Below, piece by piece: positions 36,136-63,792 of a DNA stretch of 64,000 nt (positions are counted from its first letter, which is position 1; the number at the start of each line of letters is the position of its first letter). The stretch is from Anolis carolinensis (Eukaryota), in assembly GCF_035594765.1 (NCBI RefSeq), contig NW_026943821.1, positions 18,073,608-18,137,607 on the forward strand. The letters run 5' to 3'. The translations under genes and the position numbers were made by a program. Below the pieces are notes generated by a model. The model searched no databases. It saw only the letters and a program-made list of their open reading frames with translations, and was not told the DNA's origin.

Positions 36136-37244
36136 TATAATGTCTGTTACAGGTCCTCACCTTGGAACTGGCTCAGGTTTACTGAACGGAAGTTGTCTAG
36201 GTAAAAATAATTTAAAAAGAGAAAACAAGTGAATATGAAGTGTCAAACATGTGGTGAAGAATTTCAGTCAAAGTAGTGAACTTTTTACAAATCAAATGCC
36301 AAATATCAATTGTAGTGTTTACATTTCAGCTCTAGGGTTTTATGAATGAAATTGAATATTTTGGATCCATTGTATTTTGTTTTAAGGCATCATTTTACTT
36401 CATTATTTGCTTAAATTATTTATTTTCTGCATGTTATCAAAAGCTTAATGTTGTATAGTAAATGCATTACAGCACGAAAAAAATAGTAGTCCACCAAAAT
36501 TCGAAATGTTTGCATAAGATAGGAATTGAAGTCAGCAAAAATACATTTTTAACAGGTGCTGAAATGTCATTAAGCTTCTATTGTAGGGAGTAGCAAATTC
36601 CAAAGATGAGACAATAAAACAAAAAGGATCTCTCTGAAGTAATTACAATTTCTTTGGCACTTAAAGGCTTGAGGGCGAAGTAACCTTAGAAGACGCACTG
36701 CTATAGACATGCAATCCCCATTTCCATTTCATCATAAAATGATATTCAAGATAAATCTGATTGACATCCCTCGTTTATGCCAGGGTGTGAATAACAGATG
36801 CTTTGAACTGCAACTCCTAGAATACTTCTCCATTCACTACACTGATTAGGGCTGCTGAGATTTGCAACAACAACAATTGGCGGGTCACAAGAATCCCGTG
36901 CCTGGTCTCTCTGAAATAATAACAGTAATTCCTGCATCTCCTTGTGGCTTGAGGTAGGGTACAATATAGTTAAAACAAAATATTATTAAAATATAGTTAA
37001 AACAAAATATTATTAAAATACACCGAACCTGCATAGATGTGGGCGAAAAGTCAGGAGAGAATGCTTCTGGAACATGACCATACAGCCTGGAAAACTCACA
37101 GCAACCCAGACAACTATAATTTTTTATATAGTTGTCAATACTCCCTGGATGTTACTGAACGACAACTCCCATCACTTTTGATTATCTGCTGTGTGAACTG
37201 GGGATAATGGGGATTGCAACACAACAGGCCTTGTGGCACTGATG

Positions 37245-37676
37245 TTTTTTTTTTTCCTGTTTCAGGAGCGACTTGAAAAACTGCAACCCTCACAGCTCTG
37301 AGGATGCCTGCCACAGAGGTGGGCGAAACGTCAGTTCTGGAACATGGCCATACAGTCCAAAAGATTCACAGCAACCCGAATTGCAAGGTCGCTTCTGATG
37401 TGAGAGAATTGGACGTCTGCATGGATGATGCCCAGGGCATGCTCAGATGTTGGATGTTTTACCATCCAGTGGGAGGCTTGCCTCATGTCTGTGCATGGGA
37501 AGCTGGAGCTGACAGATGGGAGCTCGCCACGCTCCCTGGATCGTCCTGCTGGCACGAGGGTTTAACTCAGGCATGGGCAAACTTCGGCCCTCCGGCTGTT
37601 AGGAATTGTGGGAGTTGAAGTCCAAAACACCCGGAGGGCCGAAGTTTGCCCATGCCTGGTTTAACCCACTGTGCTA
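37245..37676 (-). mobile_element. SINE interrupted by a Penelope-end fragment and a hAT MITE
   Basis: SINE on -; Penelope piece at about 37288-37378; MITE 37568-37658 with TIR caggcatgggcaaactt and an 8-bp target duplication gtttaac(t/c). Confidence 0.7.
37294..37336 (+). ncRNA. Minimal type I hammerhead ribozyme motif (antisense to SCMH1 intron 1)
   Basis: agct CTGAGGA t gcctgc cacagag gtgggc GAAACGTC agtt; core intact, 4-bp helix I. Confidence 0.55.
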
Positions 37677-40584: not shown

Positions 40585-40970
40585 ACATGAAAATGAATAA
40601 AATCTGGCTACTGGTATTAAAAAAATCACTAAAATCAGGACAGTAAATAAAGAACACTCAGAAGAAAGAGGAATTCCAGGCAAGAAACAATCAGGGGCAG
40701 CTAACACCTCCCAATAAAGGAACCCCCTGGCAGAAATCAGCCAGGCCTTGAAGCTGCAAGGCTTTTCAATGCTAACCAAGGTGACTGATTGCAACATTCA
40801 AACAGACAAGAGTCTGGACCTTCCACAGATATATAAACCTCTCTTGCCTGGTTTCCAACATGCCTCACGACCTCTGGGGATGCCTGCCATAGATGTGGGC
40901 AAAACGTCAGGAGAGAATGCTTCTGGAACATGGTCATACAGCCCGGAAAACTCACAGCAAGGCAGTGATT
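40585..40970 (+). mobile_element. Penelope-like element 3' fragment (hammerhead core mutated)
   Basis: Matches the post-GIY-YIG tail (aatctggctact...aaaatcaggacagtaaataaag); core reads ctgggga...aaaacgtc. Confidence 0.75.
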
Positions 40971-41333: not shown

Positions 41334-44300
41334 ATGGAGCTGTCCGGTCTGAGCGCGGCGGAGGCGGAGGCAGAAAGCGGGCGGCGGGGGCTCTGTGGGC
41401 GCGTGCACGAGTCGGCGTCGCGGTGGGTGCTTCCGGAGGGCGCGCGGGCCTCGTACCTGGAGCGCGCCTCCTGCCTCCCGCCGCCGCTCTTCATCCTCCT
41501 CGTCAGCGCCGCCGAGGTGCGAAGGGAGGGAGGGGGCGAGGAGGAGTCCCGCTGCATTGGCAGCCCCCTCCCTCCCTCCCTTCCTTCCCCGGCAGAGCCG
41601 CCCTCTCGTCCTGTCTCCGCAGCTGTCCGTCTTCGCCTTCTACGCGGTGCGGGAGCCCCAGGCCCAGTGGGTGACGCTGGAGAGCGGCATCTGGGAAAGC
41701 CCCCTCACCTACCGCCCCGACCGGAGGAGCCAGGCCTGGCGCTTCCTCTCCTACATGCTGGTCCACGCCGGGTAGGAAAAGGCGGAGGAAGGGAATGCAT
41801 GGATATAGAAGCATTGAATGGCCTTGCAGCTTCAAAGCCTGGCTGATTACTGCCTGTGGGAAATCCTTTGTGGGGAGGTGTTAGCTGGCCCTGATTGTTT
41901 CCTGTCTGGAATTCCCCTGTTTTCTGAGTGTTGCTCTTTATTTACTGTCCTGATTTTAGAGTTTTTTGAATACTGGTAGCCAGATTTTGTTCATTTTCAT
42001 GAAAGAAACAAATGAATGAATGAATGGGTGGCACAGTGTGTTAAAGCGCTGAGCTGCTGAACTTGCAGACTGAAAGGTCCCAGGTTCAAATCCGGGGAGC
42101 GGAGTGAGCGCCCACTGTTAGCCCCAGCTCCTGCCAACCTAGCAGTTCGAAAATATGTAAATGTGAGTAGATCAATAGGTACCGCTCCGGCGGGAAGGGA
42201 ACGGCGCGCCATGCAGTCATGCCGGCCACATGACTTTGGAGGTGTCTACAGACAACGCCGGCTCTTCGGCTTAGAAATGGAGATGAGCACCAACCCCCAG
42301 GGGTTAACATCAGGGGAAACCTTTACCTTTACTACCATGAATGAAGAAAGGGGGGGGCAGAAAGACATCATACCATCCTGTCTCCTGTTCCATCCGTTGG
42401 CAGCCCCTCCCACCAAGGAATAACTGCCACTCTGGGACCAGAGTGAAGAATGGGGGGTGGGGGCAGGAAGACATCATACCAACCTAAGAGCCAGGAAAAT
42501 ACTTCCATCTTGCCTCCTGTGCCATAGCAACATGCTATGCTAATTTTACAAACACACACACACACACACATAATATATATACAACAATTTATAAATTATA
42601 ATATATTGTATATACTTATAATATTGGTGCCCCTGGTGGCACAGTGTGTTAAAGCACTGAGCTGCTGAACTTGCAGAATCAACATTGTAACCAATGGTTT
42701 TGTCCCTATTGTAGTTTTATAGGCAGTAGTTTGGGCAAAAACGTCAGCCTGTAGAAGGTGGGTCCTGTGGGACTGGCGGAGGGACCCTTTCCCCGTTGGG
42801 TCACTTCTTAGGTGGCTTTTGCTCAGCCTGAACTGAACCACAATGGCAGAACAGAAGCCTGAGTGTGCGGAATGCATTGGGACCTGGAAGAGCCTTGCTG
42901 TCCTCTGCTCGCTCTCTCCCTTTGCAGCATTGAGCACATCTTGGGGAACCTGGTGCTGCAGCTTGTCCTGGGGATCCCACTGGAGCTGGTTCACAAGGGA
43001 CACCGAGTTGGGCTTGTCTACCTTGCAGGAGTGCTGGGAGGTGAGCGGGAAATGAAGGGTCCTGTGGGGCGAGGGAGGGAGGGAGACAGGGCCGTGTTTC
43101 CTTCATGGGATTCTTGGAGCACCCTTGGGGCAGGCAGGTGGGTGCTGGATCAGGACCAGACCCCTCCAAGAACTGTGGGACCTTCTTCATTCTCCTTCCT
43201 TTCTTTCCAGGGTCCTTGGCCAGTTCAGTCTGTGACCCACTCCTGGGCCTTGTCGGAGCTTCAGGGGGTGTCTATGCTTTGATTGGAGGATACTTCATGA
43301 ACGTGCTGGTGGTAAGGAAGGGCCGGCGGGCAGGGGGAGGTGGGATAGAAATGTCATTCCACTTTGGGTGCCGTCTTTCCCTCAAATAATGGCGTTTGCA
43401 AGAGTGCAGAAAGCCCCATTACATTCATAGGATTGCTGTGAGCCAACACTGAAACACACAGATGTTAGCAAAACCTCACAGACTGTAACAAGAGGCAGCC
43501 AAACCGCTTGGAGACAGAACCCAATGCTGTGGGGACAGAATCTCTTTGGGCCCATGGGTCATAGCACACTTTAGCAGCAGAATCGTGAATCTGGGGGATC
43601 TGGCGTTGGCAAAGGCACTGACCTGTTCTTTCTGCTGGCAAAAGCAGCTGCTGTGATCAGTTGTGGGCAGGGAGGAGGTGGTTGGCAACTGACCTGAACC
43701 CAGAGACTGGCATCAAAGGCACAAGGGCCCATTCTTCTGGGGAAGGCGGCCATTTCTGTTATGGCAGAAACCTGTCCAGATGAAGTGTAGACACCCTTTG
43801 GCCACTGATGGGAATGCTGGGGGGTGGTGGTCATGCAGAGAAGCATTGTGCCCAGCAAGGCATCTGTAAGTCCAGGACTTACATGAGGCAACTATATTGC
43901 TTGGTAAGGAATGATGTTATAATAATAATAATAATAATATTTGTCCTTGTTTCTCTTATTTACAGAACTTCAGAGAAATGATCCCGCTGTTTGGTGTTGC
44001 CAGGCTGCTCTTCATCTTCATCATAGGTAGCCCTCCCTCCTTCTCTACTTCTCCTACCTCATTTCAGTCAGACTGGGAGGCTGCTGGGAGCCTCTGGGTC
44101 CTCATTCTGGCCCTGGAAAGGAGGAGTTATGGGTAGGGAAGAGTAAGAGGAAGCCCACCCTACTCCGTCATATTCTCTCCCAGCAGTATCTCATTTTATA
44201 AAGGTATCACACCTGGTTAGAACTTAGGATGACTGTACACTGCTCAGCTAAAGTGAGCCAGTTATTTCTGATTTGTGCGGTTTATGTATTTTTTTGTGGG

Positions 44301-46234: not shown

Positions 46235-46605
46235 AGGGTTTTTTCGGGCTGTATGTCCATGTTCCAGAAGCATTCTCTCCTGACATTTTCCCCACATCTA
46301 TGGCAGGCATCCTGAGAGATTGTAAGGTCTGTTGGAAACTATGCAAGTGGGGTTTATATATCTGTGGAATGTTTAGGGTGGCAGAAAGAACTCTTCTCTT
46401 GGAATGTTTAAATGAAAGTGTGTTTAATGAAAGTGTGAATGTTTCCATTGGCCAATTTGATTAGCATTGAATAGGTCTGGCTGCTTACTGCTTGGGGCAA
46501 ACCTTTGCCCCTTTTCCCTAGTTTCCAACAGACCTCACAACCTCTGAGGATGCCTGCCATAGATGCGGGCGAAACGTCAGGAGAGAATGCTTCTGGAATA
46601 TGGTC
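46235..46605. mobile_element. Back-to-back Penelope-like terminal fragments
   Basis: - copy at about 46235-46500 and + copy at about 46510-46605. Confidence 0.7.
46541..46581 (+). ncRNA. Minimal type I hammerhead ribozyme motif
   Basis: cct CTGAGGA t gcctgc catagat gcgggc GAAACGTC agg; core intact. Confidence 0.65.
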
Positions 46606-47532
46606 ACGAAGGGGCAAAGATGTAAAAACACTCCTCTTAATCCAAAGTCAAAAGCAAAAGGCCCCTTTTCTGTAAAGAGGGCGAGGAAAAACACCACAAA
46701 AATTGGATCTTCAAACTGCAAAAGAACTATTTATTGCGTGGCCATAGCAATGTGACAAATACATGCATACATGCAATCAAAGGATTTGTCCAAATTTCCA
46801 AAATGGTTGCAAGGGTTTTATCACCTCCACAGAAATTAGTAAGCATATCCTTATTGGTTTACAAAGATCATTTACCCCATTTGTCTAATGTTGTCTACGT
46901 CACAAGCATCTTTAACCATTATGCAATCTCTTTGGTTTTCTATGCTGTAACAACATGTAATTCTTTAGACAATGGTGCTTTCATGTTACTGACCCTGACC
47001 TGTTGCAAGTATACGCTCGAAATCCTATGGGAACCGGTTCTGACTTGATATATTGTTATTATTTGAAAGTAACTTATTTTCTCTGGAACAACTCTTTTCC
47101 CAAACATCAGCATTTTCTCTCAAGTGCAGGCCTTCCTCAAACATAGGCCTTTTGCAACTTAGGTCAATCAAAACATACGGGACTTATAGTCATTACAAAT
47201 ATCTTTGAAAATTCTTTTTAAACCCACGTCCCTCTCGGTCACACTGCCTGGAAAACTCACAGCAACCCAGTGATTCTGGCCACGAAAGCCTTCGACGACA
47301 CATTGGCCCCGCTTTTCAGAAGGAAAGTGGCACAGCGAGAGAGAGGGCAACAGAGAGAAAGGGATAGATAGACTGTGAATGGCAAGAGACAAAATCTTTC
47401 CAATGCTAATTAGGGTGATTAACTGAAACATTAATGCTGGCTTCCCAGTGACAAAGGACTCTTGTCACACCCTGGACTCTACACAGATATATATTCTTTC
47501 CTTTCCTTACTTAGTTTATCCATACCTCACAA

Positions 47533-47573
47533 CCTCTGAGGATGCCTGCCATAGATGTGGGCGAAACGTCAGG
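47533..47573 (+). ncRNA. Minimal type I hammerhead ribozyme motif, first of a tandem pair (second at 47685-47725)
   Basis: cct CTGAGGA t gcctgc catagat gtgggc GAAACGTC agg; repeated 152 nt downstream with a G-A mismatch closing helix II. Confidence 0.65.
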
Positions 47574-47904
47574 AGAGAATACTTCTGGAACATGGCCACA
47601 CAGTCCGAAAGACATACAACAACCCTGTGATCCCGGCCATGAAAGCCTTCGACAACTGACTGTGAATGTGTTTATACCTCATCACCTCTGAGGATGCCTG
47701 CCGTAGATGTGGGAGAAACGTCAGAAGAGAATGCTTCTGGAACATGGCCATACCGTTCGAAAAACACACAACAACCCTGTGAGTGGGGGGTGCTTTGAAC
47801 TCGATTTCCTGCTACTTGGCAGGGGGTTGGACTGGATGGCCCATGAAGTCTCTTCCAACTCTACTATTCTATGATTCTATGAGTATGTTTATGTGTGTGT
47901 GTGT

Positions 47905-48099: not shown

Positions 48100-48982
48100 A
48101 TGGCGAATTACAAGGTAGGCGAGCAGCGCGAGGAGAAGATGGGGAAGCAGAGAAAGGAACCGGGGCTTCCGTGGGCTAATCCTTCTCCCTCCCTCTCTTC
48201 AGGCCGCCGACTCGAAGCGGGAGCAGTTCCGCCGCTACCTGGAGAAGTCGGGCGTGATGGACAGCCTCACCAAAGGTAGTAGGCCAGGAATGGGGCCAAG
48301 TTGGGCCTTCCTTGCAGGTGTTTTGGACTTCAACTCCCAGCATTCCTCACAGCCTCAGGCCCCTTCCTTTTCCCCCTCAGCCGCTTAAGCGGCTGAGGGG
48401 GAAAAGGAAAGGGCCTGAGGCTGTGAGGAATGCTGGGAGTTGAAGTCCAAAACACCTGCAAGGAAGGCCCAACTTTGGCCCATGCCAGTAGTAGGCCCAG
48501 GGAAGGGCCTAGTACTCTCTCTCTGTCTCTGACTCATTCTTCCTCTCTTTCAGTGCTGGTAGCCCTGTATGAGGAGCCCGAGAAGCCCAACTGTGCCCTG
48601 GAGTATCCTTCAAGCACTTACAAGCCTGCAGAAGGGAGGGAGGATGGACAACGGGACCCCTTCCCCTCTTCCCCTTCGCAGCCCTTCTTTCCTTAACTTC
48701 CCGGTGCAGCTTCCTCAAGCACCACTTGGGTGCCACGGCCCCGGAGAACCCAGAAGTGGAAGCCCTTCGCCTGGAAGTGGCGGAGCTGAAGGAGAAGTAC
48801 GAGGTCGTCCTGGAGGAGAACCGGAAACTCAAGGCCAAGGTCAGGGCGGCGAATGTAGTGGAGGGTTTTCACAAGCTCATCTCTTCTGGCAAAAGGCTAA
48901 TGGGGCTGCTCTTTACTCTTCGCAGCTGGCGCAGTATGAACCACCTCCAGAGGAGAAGCAACAACAGCAGCAGCAGCAGTAG
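48100..48982 (+). CDS. MYCBP: MYC-binding protein (AMY-1), 5 exons, 107 aa
   Basis: Exons 48100-48114, 48203-48275, 48554-48602, 48710-48839, 48926-48982: MANYKAADSKREQFRRYLEKSGVMDSLTKVLVALYEEPEKPNCALDFLKHHLG...LAQYEPPPEEKQQQQQQQ*. Confidence 0.95.
48285..48488. mobile_element. Palindromic hAT-type MITE in MYCBP intron 2
   Basis: Fold-back around ccgcttaagcgg; 8-bp duplication tagtaggc at 48277-48284 and 48489-48496. Confidence 0.85.
48603..48709 (+). other. MYCBP: U12-type (minor spliceosome) GT-AG intron of MYCBP
   Basis: 5' splice site GTATCCTT; branch site TTCCTTAAC at 48689-48697, about 12 nt from the 3' end; no polypyrimidine tract after it. Confidence 0.9.
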
Positions 48983-49896: not shown

Positions 49897-50819
49897 CTAC
49901 AGGCCTGCTTAAGAGGCCTATTGGGGGACTGACTTGAGAAGGAGGGAGGGAGAGGAGGAGTCCTGAGCCTTTAAGAGCTGCAGGTTTTGGGGACGGGGGT
50001 CTGGGAGGGGGGCACAGGGGGGAAGGGGAGGGAGGCAGGGGGTCTTGTCTCTCAGAAAGGTTTGCTGTGAGTTTTCCGGGCGGTATGGCCATGTTACGGA
50101 AGCATTCTTTCCTTTTGTTTCACCCACATCTATGGGTTGTGAGGTCTGTTGGAAACTAGGCAAGTGGGATTTATATAGATCTCTGTGCAATAATGTCCAG
50201 GATGGCAGAAAGAACTCTTGTCTGTTTGAGGCAGGTGTGAATGTTGCTATTGGCCACCTTGATTAGCATTGAATATTTATCATGTCACAAGCGAACCGAG
50301 GGTACAAGTTGTGATGTACAGTAGAGTTTCACTTATCCAAGACTTGCTTATCCAAGGTTCTGGATTAACCAAGGCATTTTTGTAGTCAATGTTTTCAATA
50401 TATCATATTTTGGTGCTAAATTCGTAAATACAGTAATTACAACATAACATTTTCTGTCAAATTTGTTGTATAACATGATGTTTTGGTGCTTAATTTGTAA
50501 AATCATAACCTAATTTGATGTTTAATAGGCATTTTCTTAATCCTTCCATATTATCCAAGATATTCACTTATCCAAGATTCTGCCGGCCCGTTTATGTTGG
50601 ATAAGTGAGACTCTACTGTATTTGGAAACACAAAGTTTAAAAACTTGGCATGATAATAAATGTCCTTTGACCAGTAGCTAGTCCCTTGGAGTGCGTCTGG
50701 TGTTTCTGTAAGACCTCGCATGATGCATGTTGCAGGGTTCAGGCTGCATTGTAGTAGGTGTTCTGTGGTTTACTCTTTTCCACACTTGCATGTTGTGGAC
50801 TCCACTTTGTGGCCCCATT

Positions 50820-51112
50820 TATTAAGCATTGAATAGCCTTGCAGCTTCAAAGCTTGGCTGTTTCTTGCTTGGGGGCAATCCTTTGTTGGGAAGTGTTATC
50901 TGGCCAGTTGCAACATTCACACTTGCCTCAAGCAGACATTCCACAGATATATAAACCCCACTTGCTTAGTTTCCAACAGACTTCAAAACCTCTGAGGATG
51001 CCTGCCATAGATGCGGGCAAAACGTCAGGAGAGAATGCTTCTGGGATATGGCTATACAGACCAGAAAGCTCACAGCAATCCGGTAATTCCGTCCATGAAA
51101 GCCTTCGATAAC
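50820..51112. mobile_element. Penelope-like terminal fragments abutting the RRAGC promoter
   Basis: Short - piece followed by a + copy; hammerhead GAAA mutated to AAAA. Confidence 0.7.
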
Positions 51113-51281: not shown

Positions 51282-52325
51282 ATGTCGGCGCTGCAGTTCG
51301 GCCCGGGCGGGCCCTCGTTGACCTCCAGTTCTGCCGAGGAAACCGGAGCGGCGGCGTTGGCGGGGGAGGCCTTCCCGAAGGACTTCGGATACGGCGCCGA
51401 CGAGGAGGAGGAAGAGGAGGACGATGACCGGGAAGCGGCGGGAGGAGGAGGAGGAGGAAGCGGGGCGGCAGGCGGCGGGGCCCCGGATGAGGAGGACGGC
51501 GAGGAAGAAGAGGAGGATGGCAGCGTCGGGGGCGGGGCCGGGATCGAGCTGGGCCTGGGCTCCGGAGGAGGAAGCGGCGCCGGGGACGCCTCGAAGCAGC
51601 CGCGGATCCTGCTGATGGGCCTCAGGAGGAGTGGGAAGTCCTCCATCCAAAAGGTGAGGAAGGGAAGAAGGGAGCGGTTTCCTAGGCAACGGTTCCCTTG
51701 ACGACCTCTTCCCCACCCCCTCCCCGGGAGCAGGAGAGGTGAGGGAGTGAGGGGCGGGGTCTCCTAGGCAACGGTTCCCTTGACAACCTCTGCCCAGGAG
51801 CCCCTGGTGGCTTGAAGGTTGGGTTGCTGACCTGAAGGCTGCCAGGTTCGAATCCCACCCAGGGAGAGCACGGATGAGCTCCCTCTGTCAGCTCCAGCTC
51901 CATGCGGGGACATGAGAGAAGCCTCCCCACAAGGATGATAAAAACATCAAAACATCCGGGCGTCCCCTGGGCAACTTCCTTGCAGACGGCCAATTCTCTC
52001 ACTCCAGAAGCGACTCAAGTTGCTCCTGACATGAAAAAAACCCTTAATAGTAAATAATAGTAAATAATAATAGTAAAGGTAAACGTTTCCCCTGACGTTA
52101 AGTCCAGTCATGTCTGACTCTGGGGGTTAGTGCTCATCTCCATTTCTAAGCCGAAGAGCCGGCGTTGTCCGTAGACACCTCCAAGGTCATGTGGCCGGCA
52201 TGACCACATGGAGCGCCGTTCAAAACTGCTCCCGGGGTTTGAACCTGGGACCTTTCAGTCTTCAGCTCAGTGCTTTAACTCACTTCGCCATCGGGGCTCC
52301 TTTTGATAATAATAATAATAATTAT

Positions 52326-55300: not shown

Positions 55301-57879
55301 AGACTTATGTATAGTATCAATATCAATATAACAAACAAAATGTCCAATTTTAACAAATATAATTATTGGTACATAAAGTAGTGTTATTAAAGTCTTGATA
55401 ATATTCTCAAGGTTTGTAACACTCTTCTTCAAAATCAAAGTTCCATGTCAATAGTAACAAAGAAGGATAACTCCCTGGTTAAACTCCTTTTTTCCTTTTC
55501 CTTTTTTTCCTTTTTGGTCTTGAAAGGCCAAGGTGTCCATTGCAAATGAGGAGTGCATGAGTGGCACCATTTTGAGGAATCCTTCCCCAAACAAGCAGTT
55601 TTTTCCAGAGAATTCTTCCAGGGCCAAAGCCCCCCATTTCCTCACATTCCCAGCTGACACATACAAATCTGGTTCTGTGTTTTCCTTTTCTCCTTTGCAG
55701 AATTCAGGGATTGAAAAGGCTTTCCTCTTTGACGTTGTGAGCAAGATCTACATTGCCACGGACAGCTCCCCGGTTGACATGCAGTCCTACGAACTCTGCT
55801 GCGACATGATCGACGTGGTCATCGATGTCTCCTGCATCTATGGGTCAGTGCCTTGCATTTGGAGCTGTTGCAGCCGCTCAGGAGGCCTTCAGAGGGAACT
55901 CTTTGGAGTGGTTTTGAAGGCTCCGCATCCTGTTGGGGCATCCCAATTCCTGTGGGGCTGTTGCGGCCCAGGGTGTCCTGAGCAGTCCCTATCTGTCCAT
56001 TTCCCCATCTCTCCCTCGGTGGCTGAGCAGTGGCCCTCCTCTCTCCCCCTCGGCTGCAGGTTGAAGGAGGATGGCAGCGGAAGCGCTTACGACAAGGAAT
56101 CCATGGCCATCATCCGGCTCAACAATACGACCGTCCTGTACCTCAAAGAGGTGACCAAGTTCCTGGCTTTAGTCTGCATCCTGAGAGAAGAGAGCTTTGA
56201 GCGCAAAGGTGAGGCAAATCGAGACTTCCCCGCTTCCTCAAATGGGCCTCTCTCCTGGGGTCTGAGCTGCTCTGCGCTCAACTCATGGTCTCTTTTGGGA
56301 GGCCTTAGGTGTCTGCAGACTGCCCTGGATGCTTTTAATGATCTCTGTGGGAATGAATGGGAATGGATTCACGGCCGGGCTTCCTCCCCCTTCGCAAGCA
56401 CGGTTGGTTGGAACGTGGGAGAGGGCCTTCTCTGTGGTGGCTCCCCGGCTCTGGAATTCCCTCCCCAGGGAGATTAGGTTAGCACCTACCCTCGCTGTCT
56501 TCCGTAAGCAATTAAAAACATGGATGTGTTGTCGAAGGCTTTCATGGTCGGGATCACAGGGTTGTTGTATATTTTCCAGGCTGTATGGCCATGTTCTAGA
56601 AGTATTCTTTCCTGACGTTTCGCCCACATCTATGGCAGGCATCCTCAGAGGTTGTGAGGTATACATGGCCATACAGCCTGGAAAACATACAACAACCCAA
56701 AAACATGGATGTTCTGTTGTGCTTTTGATTAGACAAGGTCCTACAACCTGGCCCCTATTCATATTGAAATCTGCTTTTCCTCTTTACAGTTGTTTTGTCA
56801 TCTCAGGACTTTTTCCCAACCTACTTCCTACCCCATGTATTTCTGCTTTGATTTATATATCAGTTCTAACTTTGATGAGTTGTTAGTTACCCATTATGCC
56901 CTAGGATGGTACATTTTAAAGGCACATTACCCATTATGCCCTAGGATGGCACATTTTAAAGGCACATTACCCATTATGCCCTAGGATGATACATTACTTT
57001 TTAATGGTTTTATAGCTCCCACCTTGGTAGCCCCCGATGGCATAGTGGACTAAAGCCTTGTGACTTGAAGGTTGGGTTGCTGACCGGAGAGTGCGGATGA
57101 GCTCCCTTTATCAGCTCCAGCTCCATGCGGGGACATGAGAGAAGCCTCCCACAAGGATGGTAAAAACATCAAAACATCCGGGCGTCCCCTGGGCAACGTT
57201 CTTGCAGATGGCCAATTTTCTCACTCCAGAAGTGACTCAAGTTGCTCCTGACACGAAAAAAAGCCCTTGGTAGCATTTAGGAAGAGCCTGAAAACCTGGC
57301 TCTTCGCACAGGTCTTTGGATAAGTACTGCCCAGTTGTATGATAAATTTCATACCGGCGATTACTTCTTGATCAGTTGTACCTTTGCATTGTTAATCTCG
57401 CTGATATAGCCACAGGCTTCACCCCCACTTCAAGGTGCTCTCCCATAATCTTATAGCACTTTTAACTACCTCTTGTTTACAAAACTCACTTAGCGCACTT
57501 TTGCCCAGTTCATTTTTATTATTCTGTTGCTTGTGTTTTACTAATGTTTGTTATTTTACTTTTATGTTAATTTTTAATTTTTATTTGCGCATGGTTTCTG
57601 TTATTTGATGTTGTTTTATGTTTGTTATTGTATTTGCCTGGGATTTGGCCCCATGTAAGCCGCCCCGAGTCCCCCCGGGGAGATGGAGGCGGGGTATAAA
57701 AATAAAATAATAATAATAATTATGATGTTATTTTAACTAAGGCATGTTTAATTTGTTCTAATTTATACTTGTGTTTTAAAGTGTATTTTATGATGTAAAT
57801 GTGACTGATTGGGCTTGTCCCCATGTAAGCCGCTCTGAGTCACTTCGGGGAGATGGTGGTGGCATACAAAAATAAAGTA

Positions 57880-59584: not shown

Positions 59585-59778
59585 CAGGTATTGGCAAACT
59601 TGGGCCCTCCAGGTGTTTTGGACTTCAACTCCCACCATTCCTAACAGCCTCAGGCCCCTTCCTTTTCCCCCTCCGCCGCTTAAGCGGCGGAGGGGGAAAA
59701 GGAAGGGGCCTGAGGCTGTTAGGAATGGTGGGAGTTGAAGTCCAAAACTCCTGCAGGCCTCAAGTTGTTCCATGCCTG
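59585..59778. mobile_element. Palindromic hAT-type MITE in the RRAGC 3'UTR
   Basis: Fold-back centred on ccgcttaagcgg, lying between the stop (59038) and AATAAA (60179). Confidence 0.8.
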
Positions 59779-60184: not shown

Positions 60185-60304
60185 ATGCCTTTATCTCCGT
60201 AAGGCCTTCTATGTACTGTGTGACTTGGAAGGTGGGTCTATGTGGAGGGAGGAAGGGGTTTGGAAGACCCTAGATGGATAGATGCAAAGCAGACCTCCAT
60301 GGTA

Positions 60305-60950
60305 TCTGGGTTGCTGTGAGTTTTCTGGGATGTATGGCCATGTTCCAGAAGCATTTTCTCCTGTCGTTTTGCCTGCATCTATGGCAGGAATCCTCAGAGG
60401 TTGTGAGGTATGTTGGAAATTATGCAAGTGGGATTTATATATCTGTGGAATGTTCAGGGTGGGAGAAAGAAGTCTTGTCTGTTTGAGGCAGGTATGAATG
60501 TTTCAATTGACCACCATGATTAGCATTGAATACCCATTCAATTTCAAGGTCTGATTGTTTACCACCTGGGGGAATACTTTGTTGGGACGTGTTAGCTGGC
60601 CCTGATTGAGCTGTGTCTGGAATTCTTCTGTTTTCTGAATGTTGTTCTTTATTCACTGTCCTGATTTTAGAATTTTTGAATACTGGTAGCCAGATTTTGT
60701 CCATGGTTTCCTCCTTTCTGTTGAAATTGTCCACATGCTTGTAAATTTCAATGGCTTCTCTGTGTAGCCTGACATGGTGGTTGTTAGAGTCCAGCATGTC
60801 TGTGTTCTCACATAGTATGCCATGTCCAGGGTGGTTCATCAAGCTCTCTTTATGGCTGACTTCTCTGGTTAGTCTGCAGTGCCATTCATGTTCTTTGATT
60901 TTGTGTCTGAGCAATGCTGCGTTTGGTGGTCCCTATGTAGACTTCTCCAC
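60305..60950 (-). mobile_element. Penelope-like element 3' part with GIY-YIG endonuclease remnant
   Basis: VYIGTTKRSIAQT / IKEHEWHCRL...RLHREAIEIYKHVDNFNRKEE followed by the hammerhead-bearing tail (core mutated in this copy). Confidence 0.9.
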
Positions 60951-60954
60951 ACTG

Positions 60955-61325
60955 TCCTCTAAAATCAGGACAGTGAATAAAGAAGGAATTCCAGACATGA
61001 AACAATCAGGGCCAGCTAACACCTCCCAACAAAGGATTCCCCCAGGCAATAAACAACCAGACCTTGAAACCGAAAGGCCATTCAGTGCTAAGCAAGGTGG
61101 CTAATTGAAACATTCACACTTGCTTCAGTTCTTTCTCCCACCCTGGACATTCCACAGAAATATAAACCACACTTGCCTAGTTTCTAACATGATTTCACAA
61201 CCTCTGAGGATGCCTGCCATAGATGCAGGCGAAACGTCAGGAGAAAATGCTTATGGAACATGGCCACACAGCCTGGAAAACTAACAGCAACTCAGTGTTT
61301 CTGGCCATGAAAGCCTTGGACAACT
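60955..61325 (+). mobile_element. Inverted copy of the Penelope tail joined to the truncation point of the preceding element
   Basis: Reverse-complement homology to about 60305-60670. Confidence 0.8.
61201..61241 (+). ncRNA. Minimal type I hammerhead ribozyme motif, best-preserved copy
   Basis: cct CTGAGGA(61204-61210) t GCCTGC catagat GCAGGC GAAACGTC agg; perfect 6-bp helix II; predicted cut between 61238 and 61239. Confidence 0.7.
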
Positions 61326-61737
61326 CCTTGGGATCTGCCTCTGAGTCCAGGGGAGGGAGCAAGAAGTTCTTTCCTCTGCAGCTGAGGGTCCCATGCGAGG
61401 GGGTGGAAGGGGCTCCAGCAGCAAGCCCCCCCCACCCCCCGCCGCCTGGGGAGATCAAGAGCTGTAAGGAGGGCTGGCTGGTCTCCTGAGAGGCCTCCAT
61501 CCATCTGCAAGGTTGGCTTTAGTGAGAAGCGATGCCCAATGTACCTGGTTGCTCTTGGGTACCATGTGTTGTGAGGAAACCAAGGCAAACACAGTGGCTC
61601 ATGAGAAAGAGAGGAGATCCCTAACTCTAGTCCTGGCTTCCATAGACCCTCCTGGGATGAAGCCCCACGTCTGAGTCTGGTGCACAAATGCGTTCAGTCA
61701 GTGTCCAGTTTTCTCATTTGCATCAGAGATTGACTAG

Positions 61738-62192
61738 TAAAAGGTAAAGGTTTCCCCTGACATTAAGTCCAGTCGTGACCGACTCTGGAGGTTGGTGCTC
61801 ATCTCCATTTCTAAGCCGAAGAGCTGGCGTTGTCCATAGACACCTCCAAGGTCATGTGGCCAGCATGACTGCATGGAGCGCTGTTATCTTCCCGCCGGAG
61901 CGGTACCTATTGATCTACTCACATTTGCATGTTTTCAAACTGGTAGGTTGGCAGAAGCTGGGGCTAACAGTAGGAGCTCACCCCACCTCCAGATTCGAAC
62001 CTGTGACCTTTCGGTCCACAAGTTTTATTATTGTTGTTTTTATTGTTTTTATTGTTATTTTAAAGCCAAGTGTATTGCTTTAATCTATTTTTGTAAACCG
62101 CTCCGAGCCAAACTGGGAGTAGCGGTATATAAGCTTAATAAATAAATAAGTTCAGCAGCTCAGTGCTTTAACACACTGTGCCACCAGGGCTC
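61738..62192 (-). mobile_element. Sauria SINE interrupted by an L2-tail-like insert; partial second copy at 62300-62420
   Basis: aaaggtaaaggt tail and homology to 1905-2236. Confidence 0.7.
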
Positions 62193-63114: not shown

Positions 63115-63792
63115 CAATGGTGCAGTTGGCCACCTTGATTAGAATTAAATGGCGTTGCAGCTTCAGAGTCTGACTGCTTCCTACCTGGGGGAATCCTTTG
63201 TTGAGAGGTGATTAGCTGGCCCTGATTGTTTGTTGTCTAGAATTTCTGTGTTTTTGAGTGTTGTTCCTTATTTACTGTCCTGTTACTGTTATAATATTTA
63301 AATGTTGACCAGAAAAAAATACTTACTAAAAACATAGAATTAAAAACAATGAGGTTGCAGAAGTTACAGGGCAAGGGGACAATTTCAACAGAAAGGAGGA
63401 AATAATGAAAATGAGCAAAATCTGCTACCAGTATCAAAAAACTCTAGAATCAGGTCAGTAAATAAAGAACAACACTCAAAAACAGAGGAATTCCAGACAA
63501 CAAACAATCAGGGCCAACTAATCACCTCCCAACAAAGGATTCCCCCAGGTAGGAAGCAGTCAGACTCTGAAGCTGCGAGGCCATTTAATTCTGATTAAGG
63601 TGGCCAACTGCACCGTTCACATCTCAAACAGACAAGAGTTCTTTTTCCCACCCTGGATATATCCACAGATATATAAACTCCACTTGCCTAGTTTCCAACA
63701 GACCTCACAATTTCTGAGGATGCCTGCCATAGATGTAGGTGAAACGTCAGGAGAGAATGCTTCTGAAACATGGCCATACAGCCCGGAAAACT
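63115..63792. mobile_element. Back-to-back Penelope tail fragments; hammerhead motif at 63711-63751 (+)
   Basis: 63115-63285 (-) mirrors about 63450-63615 (+); ttt CTGAGGA t gcctgc catagat gtaggt GAAACGTC agg. Confidence 0.75.

Follow-up and report, generated by a model that had tools for sequence, protein, structure and literature searches.

Minimal type I hammerhead ribozymes reside in massive copy number in the pseudo-LTRs of metazoan Penelope-like elements (PLEs), as described by Cervera & De la Pena (2014; PMC4209133) in a paper that mentions neither Anolis nor lizards. Minimal PLE hammerheads are also covered by Lunse, Weinberg & Breaker (2017), as cited in PMC6765202. These ribozymes cleave poorly even as dimers (PMC4209133). 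Closest to the locus studied here is the Poseidon-type element of the green anole, Anolis carolinensis, whose consensus, Poseidon_Ac, begins at the ATG and ends with ...aacctctgagg (Arkhipova 2006; File S1 of PMC11167929). The ribozyme of this element (PAc) cleaves in vitro only when the PAc protein is present (Frangieh et al. 2024, Mob DNA 15:12, PMC11167929), whereas invertebrate PLE examples were assayed as RNA dimers or trimers. Cleavage at GUC|A was demonstrated in an RNA spanning -126 to +235 together with PAc protein; it was abolished by C3G or G8C and partly restored in the double mutant (PMC11167929).

The same study reported that hammerhead cleavage is dispensable for insertion in vitro, mutants inserting normally, and that anole RNA-seq contained no detectable ends at the cut site (PMC11167929). 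The first 172 nt of the ORF are needed in the template RNA and were proposed to be the site of a protein-binding motif, and the PAc protein nicks and extends both DNA strands (PMC11167929). Reverse transcription starts at two internal sites, genomic copies end at about +85 or about +119, and the difference corresponds to a 34-nt 'tail' (PMC11167929). Head-to-head pairs of copies with the tail on one arm only were drawn in 2021 (PMC8557442, Fig. 2). A second related group is formed by the animal non-LTR retrozymes, short tandem units with type I hammerheads that are related to PLE pseudo-LTRs (Cervera & De la Pena 2020, PMC7229834; Li, Clavereau & Pollet 2026, preprint).

Motif class (2014), element (2006) and ribozyme with mutational controls (2024) are thus already known, and the copies described below add nothing new in kind. 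Tail, head-to-head pairs, partial tandems, start-codon overlap and protein-assisted cleavage have all been published for A. carolinensis. Beyond good annotation the locus is of little import; it serves as a clean illustration of the published PAc insertion architecture.

The hammerhead motif and its copies

The window, by which we mean the whole 64-kb stretch of DNA analysed, contains a motif at 61201-61241(+) that reads, in 5' to 3' order, CCU / CUGAGGA / U / GCCUGC-(CAUAGAU)-GCAGGC / GAA / A-CG-U / C, the cut, and AGG. Helix I comprises 3 bp (CCU/AGG) and helix II 6 bp with a 7-nt loop. A previous reading of this DNA, made from its letters alone (the sequence-only reading), had parsed the motif as a minimal type I hammerhead, and at the level of sequence this parse is borne out. 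The core positions C3 U4 G5 A6 N7 G8 A9 and G12 A13 A14 are present in 9/16 window copies, 61201-61241 included. A15.1 and U16.1 can pair around CG, and they are followed by C17, a non-G nucleotide, and then A1.1. The pair closing helix II, G10.1-C11.1, is G-C in five copies (61201, 46541, 47533, 56611(-) and 37295) and G-U or G-A in four others. An open-ended helix I can be formed from the sequence flanking the core, but it is weak (3 bp; 95.8% of cells paired; one double change). Helix III is not stable: in a monomer it amounts to one pair around a 2-nt loop, although a 4-bp intermolecular ACGU/ACGU helix is possible. With the metazoan PLE hammerheads (PMC4209133) the motif shares the type I arrangement, the nucleotide between A9 and G10.1, the G10.1-C11.1 pair, the 6-bp helix II, the 3-bp helix I, the palindromic helix III (ACGU), the pseudo-LTR location and the massive copy number.

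The nucleotide inserted between A9 and 10.1 is U in 12/12 aligned copies. This extra U had been reported before; what had been overlooked is that it constitutes the middle letter of the element's start codon (A9-U-G10.1, the U of AUG). The ACGU palindrome is likewise found in 12/12 aligned copies, and four further copies have AUGU, AAGU or ACAA instead. The idea that the CpG of ACGU escapes decay, which came from the first alignment (0/12 changed), was dropped once these four changed copies had been added, CpG decay then standing at 3/16.

The pattern CTGANGA-N20-GAAACGTC has nine exact matches on both strands of the 64-kb window; in 100 shuffles the expectation was 0.00. The census by blastn-short was reproduced by an unfiltered covariance-model search of the window, the model having been trained on the nine intact copies: 16 copies in 64 kb or 250 per Mb, in agreement with the approximate number of recurrences claimed earlier. 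Thirteen of them are full-length 41-nt motifs, one is cut by the window start, one lacks the 5' half and one is internally deleted (Table 1). All seven copies previously listed as intact are intact, with coordinates off by at most 1-2 nt. Two further copies with both boxes, 1621-1661(+) and 47685-47725(+), had not been listed; in these an A at 11.1 breaks the G10.1-C11.1 pair. The copies at 46541, 47533, 56611(-) and 61201 are fully canonical, to which 37295 may be added if the G-U at its outermost helix I pair is accepted (4-5 of 16). Boxes are also intact at 1566(-) and 63711, where 10.1-11.1 is G-U, and at 1621 and 47685, where it is G-A. The remaining seven copies are broken, most commonly by G12>A (5/16), G12 forming a CpG with C11.1. 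The dispersed copies in the window are decaying fossils, those that are no longer canonical having lost G12, 11.1, helix I or entire segments.

Table 1. Hammerhead copies, insertions and flanking repeats in the window
Feature	Position	Strand	Basis
Intact hammerhead; helix II fully Watson-Crick, GCCUGC/GCAGGC	61201..61241	+	covariance model, 70.0 bits
AUG of element ORF, within motif 61201..61241	61210-61212	+	
Predicted cut in motif 61201..61241	between 61238 and 61239	+	sequence
Intact hammerhead, equal to published Poseidon_Ac junction 41-mer; first of 152-nt tandem pair	47533..47573	+	72.5 bits
Second of tandem pair; boxes intact, A at 11.1, helix I mismatch	47685..47725	+	pattern, covariance model
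Intact hammerhead, equal to published 41-mer; within mini-element (-21 to +119)	56611..56651	-	pattern, covariance model
Intact hammerhead; helix II 3' strand GCGGGC	46541..46581	+	pattern, covariance model
Broken hammerhead: G5>C, 11.1/12 changed, ACGU>AUGU; partner of 46541 copy	46279..46319	-	covariance model
Boxes intact; outermost helix I pair G-U; deletion after motif	37295..37335	+	pattern, covariance model
Copy without CUGANGA half; ACGU>AAGU	37023..37055	+	blastn-short, covariance model
Boxes intact; N7=A, G10.1-U11.1; minus arm of head-to-head mini-element pair	1566..1606	-	pattern, covariance model
Boxes intact, A at 11.1; plus arm with 1566(-), tail form	1621..1661	+	pattern, covariance model
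Boxes intact; helix I UUU/AGG (two G-U), helix II GCCUGC/GUAGGU	63711..63751	+	pattern, covariance model
Broken hammerhead: A6>G, G12>A	40871..40911	+	blastn-short, covariance model
Broken hammerhead: G12>A	50989..51029	+	covariance model
Degenerate hammerhead of minus arm: G10.1>U, G12>A, U16.1>A	60360..60400	-	covariance model
Remnant; CUGANGA box and helix II 5' strand deleted internally	50117..50137	-	covariance model
Copy cut by window start: G12>A, ACGU>AUGU	1..30	+	blastn-short, covariance model
5'-truncated Poseidon-type PLE copy, plus arm of head-to-head pair	60958..61330	+	self-comparison, consensus, depth
Inverted partner: GIY-YIG remnant, UTR, degenerate hammerhead, end at about +83, without tail	60306..60955	-	self-comparison, by-eye translation
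Left copy of probable target-site duplication of 60306-61330 pair	60295..60308		12/14 match to 61324-61337
Right copy of probable target-site duplication of 60306-61330 pair	61324..61337		12/14 match to 60295-60308
Exact 14-bp duplication flanking 56528-56698 pair	56514-56527 and 56699-56712		sequence
Exact 10-mer repeat ACTTTGGAAC flanking 1566(-)/1621(+) pair	1503-1512 and 1745-1754		sequence
Head-to-head pair	1509-1615(-) / 1621-1751(+)		self-comparison
Head-to-head pair	46240-46473(-) / 46514-46607(+)		self-comparison
Head-to-head pair	50059..50905(-) / 50935-51112(+)		self-comparison
Head-to-head pair; plus fragment = +47 to +83	56528-56657(-) / 56663-56698(+)		self-comparison
Head-to-head pair	60306-60955(-) / 60958-61330(+)		self-comparison
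Head-to-head pair	63116-63282(-) / 63361-63792(+)		self-comparison

Host element and insertion architecture

We are in very little doubt that the copies go back to insertions of a Penelope-like retrotransposon of Poseidon type in the green anole, comprising the Poseidon_Ac/PAc family and older relatives. Since the consensus starts at the ATG and ends as quoted above, joining two elements in tandem recreates the 41-mer, and the copies at 47533-47573 and 56611-56651(-) are identical to this junction sequence when compared by eye. The 61201 copy differs from the published 41-mer at 11.5 and 11.4 only. The encoded N-terminus MPAID.GETSGENA.GTWPHS agrees with the published PAc protein, the short ORF from the AUG at 61210 translating as MPAIDAGETSGENAYGTWPHSLEN followed by a stop. 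C17 at 61238 lies 26 nt after the ATG, matching the published PAc cut (PMC11167929). In a self-comparison of the window, the motif belongs to a repeat that is about 130 to 650 bp long, and the 3' end of this repeat is about 90-130 nt away. Assignment to minimal type I hammerheads at PLE ends, as proposed by the sequence-only reading, was therefore correct, and the element can now be named precisely as Poseidon_Ac/PAc.

The statement that the motif at 61201 lies in the tail following a GIY-YIG remnant (60305-60950) was mistaken: the remnant is on the minus strand, in the inverted partner copy, and the plus arm starts at 60958, past all endonuclease motifs. On the minus strand, 60435-60955 encodes 'CGEVYIGTTKRS', a frameshift, and then 'IKEHEWHCRL ... 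HVRLHREAIEI.KHVDNFNRKEETM ... KIWLPV'; as judged by eye against the published PAc translation, this peptide is the C-terminal GIY-YIG endonuclease region of the Poseidon_Ac protein. A Pfam search of the ORF pieces of the minus-arm copy and of the other long ORFs of the window returned no GIY-YIG or reverse transcriptase (RT) match, and no RT-bearing copy lies within the window. The hammerhead occupies a pseudo-LTR position relative to a GIY-YIG ORF, the remnant preceding the motif in the 60306-60955(-) copy. Common to the window copies and PAc (PMC11167929) are the 41-mer, the AUG in the core, the N-terminal peptide, the UTR, the GIY-YIG C-terminus and the +85/+119 boundaries. What sets the window copies apart is their greater age, their divergence (about 75-90% similarity) and their 5' truncation; none of this is a difference in kind.

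In the plus arm at 60958..61330(+), the final ~130 nt of the ORF are followed by a UTR of ~126 nt and the hammerhead/AUG junction, after which come ~114-120 nt from the start of the ORF (the 'tail' form). This arm belongs to one of six head-to-head pairs in the window, and most copies sit in such pairs. Direct repeats of 10-14 bp, taken as target-site duplications, bracket three of the pairs, each of which is therefore one insertion event. Both ends are preserved in four pairs, where an arm ending at about +83/85 faces one that extends to about +114-119; only the latter has the tail, as in the published drawing (PMC8557442). An alignment of 12 copies showed the same two classes of ends, at about +83 to +86 for 1566(-), 40871, 47685 and 60360(-) and at about +114 to +120 for 1621, 47533, 50989, 56611(-) and 61201. 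When contigs from four public runs were aligned to 60940-61700 as a measure of family depth, this depth fell from 2.4e5-8.5e5 in the bin ending at 61329 (+120) to <350 in the bin starting at 61330. The minus arm at 50059-50905(-) appears split by ~550 bp (50276-50824), probably a later insertion into the PLE copy.

The mini-elements 1566(-), 1621(+), 47685(+) and 56611(-) all begin at about -21 from the AUG (TATACCTCA...). In the pseudo-LTR, a TATA-like AT-rich box at about -53 to -45 precedes this point by ~30 nt. The -21 boundary common to all four may be the transcription start of the element; if so, the mini-elements would be full-length cDNAs covering the RNA from its 5' end as far as the internal RT start. 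A tandem pair with a spacing of 152 nt lies within 47533-47780, and contigs from other loci show similar tail-to-(-15) joints.

Copying starts downstream of the hammerhead and 5' truncation is heavy, and nearly every insertion therefore keeps one motif. As this applies however short the insertion is, it explains both the 16 copies in the 64-kb window and a very large number across the genome. Such a number had been extrapolated before and is plausible in its order of magnitude, since contig depth over the motif was about 3e5 times that of unique flank in what is probably a DNA run, a ratio that indicates an order of magnitude and not a copy number and that agrees with the 250 motifs per Mb of the window; however, a very large number is only what would be expected of so abundant an element. 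Annotation based on Rfam probably misses hundreds of thousands of such motifs in the lizard genome.

Sequence tests and competing readings

Covariation in the nine intact copies was not significant, with 70/500 shuffles reaching the observed score and a single double change. The variable positions of helix II are transitions (11.5 C/U, 11.4 G/A, 11.1 C>U). In the family contigs, ~85% of depth has U at 11.5 and G at 11.4, which makes the published GUGGGC the majority form; C11.1>U accounts for ~20% and G12>A for ~10% of depth, and no variant reaches >=10% in CUGANGA or ACGUC. Most helix II variants do retain pairing through G-U, as the sequence-only reading had remarked, but such retention does not testify to constraint. 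Among six longer copies, loop II was invariant (pairwise identity 1.00), followed by the catalytic boxes (0.92), the stretch from +33 to +60 (0.88) and the UTR (0.76). As far as sequence identity tells, the conserved block is -9 to +60 as a whole and is not specific to catalytic positions. This block includes the ORF start and forms part of the 172 nt that the template RNA needs (PMC11167929). Because loop II and +33 to +60 are as conserved as the core, coding and protein-binding constraints on master copies could explain the conservation.

In nearest-neighbour folding, which is uninformative on tertiary or protein-assisted folding, the hammerhead was never the minimum-energy structure of monomers, dimers or the tandem pair. 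A register-shifted CUGA/UCAG pairing is favoured in monomers by 3-10 kcal/mol (~6 in most copies); for the 61201 monomer the values are -17.0 (shifted pairing) versus -10.8 kcal/mol (hammerhead). For the dimer, an extended duplex at -38.2 kcal/mol compares with -22.1 kcal/mol for the double hammerhead. Such weaknesses match the literature on poor minimal-hammerhead cleavage, dependence on PAc protein, dispensability for insertion in vitro and lack of RNA-seq ends. No Rfam hammerhead model produced a match: not with the gathering score as cutoff, and not at E<=10, whether on the whole window or on the 151 nt of 61150-61300. Hammerhead_1 (RF00163) and the other models share the core boxes but expect a helix III hairpin and a longer helix I, and we attribute their silence to the limits of the models rather than counting it against the motif. 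The window contributes very little to the question of ribozyme function in either direction. That activity cannot be read from sequence, as had been cautioned, holds for the diverged copies, whereas the exact 41-mer of two copies has published cleavage with mutant controls. Similarly, the expectation of dimeric cleavage agrees with the general inference for PLE minimal hammerheads (Cervera & De la Pena 2014), but the published requirement of PAc is for its protein.

Conservation of the whole -9 to +60 block, with loop II invariant among long copies, suits a model in which the motif is kept as ORF start, N-terminus and RT-bound RNA while the hammerhead fold is vestigial and irrelevant in vivo, the dispersed copies never cleaving. 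The thermodynamic disadvantage of the active fold, the G12>A lesion in 5/16 window copies and ~10% of family contig depth, and the normal insertion of hammerhead mutants in vitro together with the missing RNA-seq ends (PMC11167929) all point the same way. Yet hammerheads recur in PLE pseudo-LTRs of metazoans, plants, fungi and protists despite unrelated flanks, which argues for a selected role (PMC4209133), and the cleavage of PAc depends on C3 and G8 with compensatory rescue (PMC11167929), so that we consider a vestigial fold possible but on balance rather unlikely. That the repeat resembles the hammerhead consensus by chance has a virtually negligible probability. It could appeal to the silent Rfam models, but 11/11 core positions, the 10.1-11.1 pair, the inserted nucleotide and the palindrome fit the PLE descriptor (PMC4209133), and the published C3G, G8C and double-mutant results for an identical sequence refute it (PMC11167929).

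Some copies might alternatively constitute a non-autonomous, retrozyme-like family of ~140-nt mini-elements (-21 to +119) occurring singly, head-to-head or as 152-155-nt tandems. The PLE protein would then mobilise in trans the circles formed from transcripts that had been cut at successive hammerheads. The 47533/47685 tandem, by its 152-nt spacing, resembles a dimer of retrozyme units; four mini-copies have the common 5' boundary at -21; contigs from other loci join ~+115/+117 back to ~-15; and a derivation of animal non-LTR retrozymes from PLE pseudo-LTRs is proposed in the 2026 preprint (Li, Clavereau & Pollet). However, the second tandem unit has a broken 11.1 pair and a helix I mismatch, and the same structures are expected from internal RT initiation on short transcripts started in the pseudo-LTR combined with partial-tandem insertion. 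The published RNA-seq, without ends at the cut site (PMC11167929), is a further counterargument. Canonical retrozyme hammerheads moreover have contacts between the loops of helices I and II and abundant circular RNAs, in contrast to the two units of the window, one of them damaged, which are known from genomic sequence. We regard a retrozyme-like origin as improbable and retain the interpretation of all copies as Poseidon-type insertions.

A possible mechanism and other features of the window

The hammerhead of the Poseidon-type element spans the boundary between the 3' UTR (pseudo-LTR) and the next ORF. C3-G8 directly precede the start codon, A9-U-G10.1 is the AUG itself, and helix II and the GAAACGUC box correspond to codons 1-10. 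As published, the RT begins to copy at internal positions of the RNA, about +85 or +111 to +118 of the ORF, on the downstream side of the hammerhead. That the protein nicks and extends each of the two DNA strands fits the head-to-head pairs, the one target-site duplication and the 30-40-nt tail on one arm. With helix III limited to A15.1-U16.1 around CG, the active fold presumably needs a second copy or a protein. Two RNAs could form a double hammerhead in which their ACGU palindromes pair as a helix III of 4 bp and each strand is cut by the core of the other, and the predicted PAc protein dimer may bring the two RNAs together. A cut at this site would leave the AUG detached from the remaining ORF, and a cleaved RNA could therefore not be the mRNA.

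It is conceivable, though we give it very little credence, that the need for PAc protein and the ACGU palindrome reflect one mechanism, a protein dimer assembling a double hammerhead in trans whose two cores would each cut the opposite RNA 26 nt after its AUG, and that canonical copies in host transcripts can be cut as well. Plus-strand copies near the RagA-like gene could be examples of such candidates. If this were true, transposon activity would be linked to host RNA processing in tissues that express the PAc protein.

The gene in question is represented by an ORF piece at 55698-55811(+) with similarity to the C-terminal end of a Pfam profile, Gtr1_RagA (E=2.4e-05); the piece is probably a plus-strand exon of a Rag GTPase gene. 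Three near-perfect palindromes of ~140 nt are present at 3983-4124, 48316-48457 and 59611-59752. All three match mir-5408 on both strands below threshold (58.7-64.0 bits versus a gathering score of 90), and those at 3983-4124 and 48316-48457 also have a subthreshold match to mir-3160 on both strands; they resemble a MITE-type inverted-repeat family more than curated miRNA genes. Positions 2840-2993 are a run of 154 N. Finally, another, unrelated interspersed repeat, ~290 bp in length, occurs at 61735-62024, 1947-2237(-), 42060-42334(-) and 52071-52220, and its copies are 84-91% alike.
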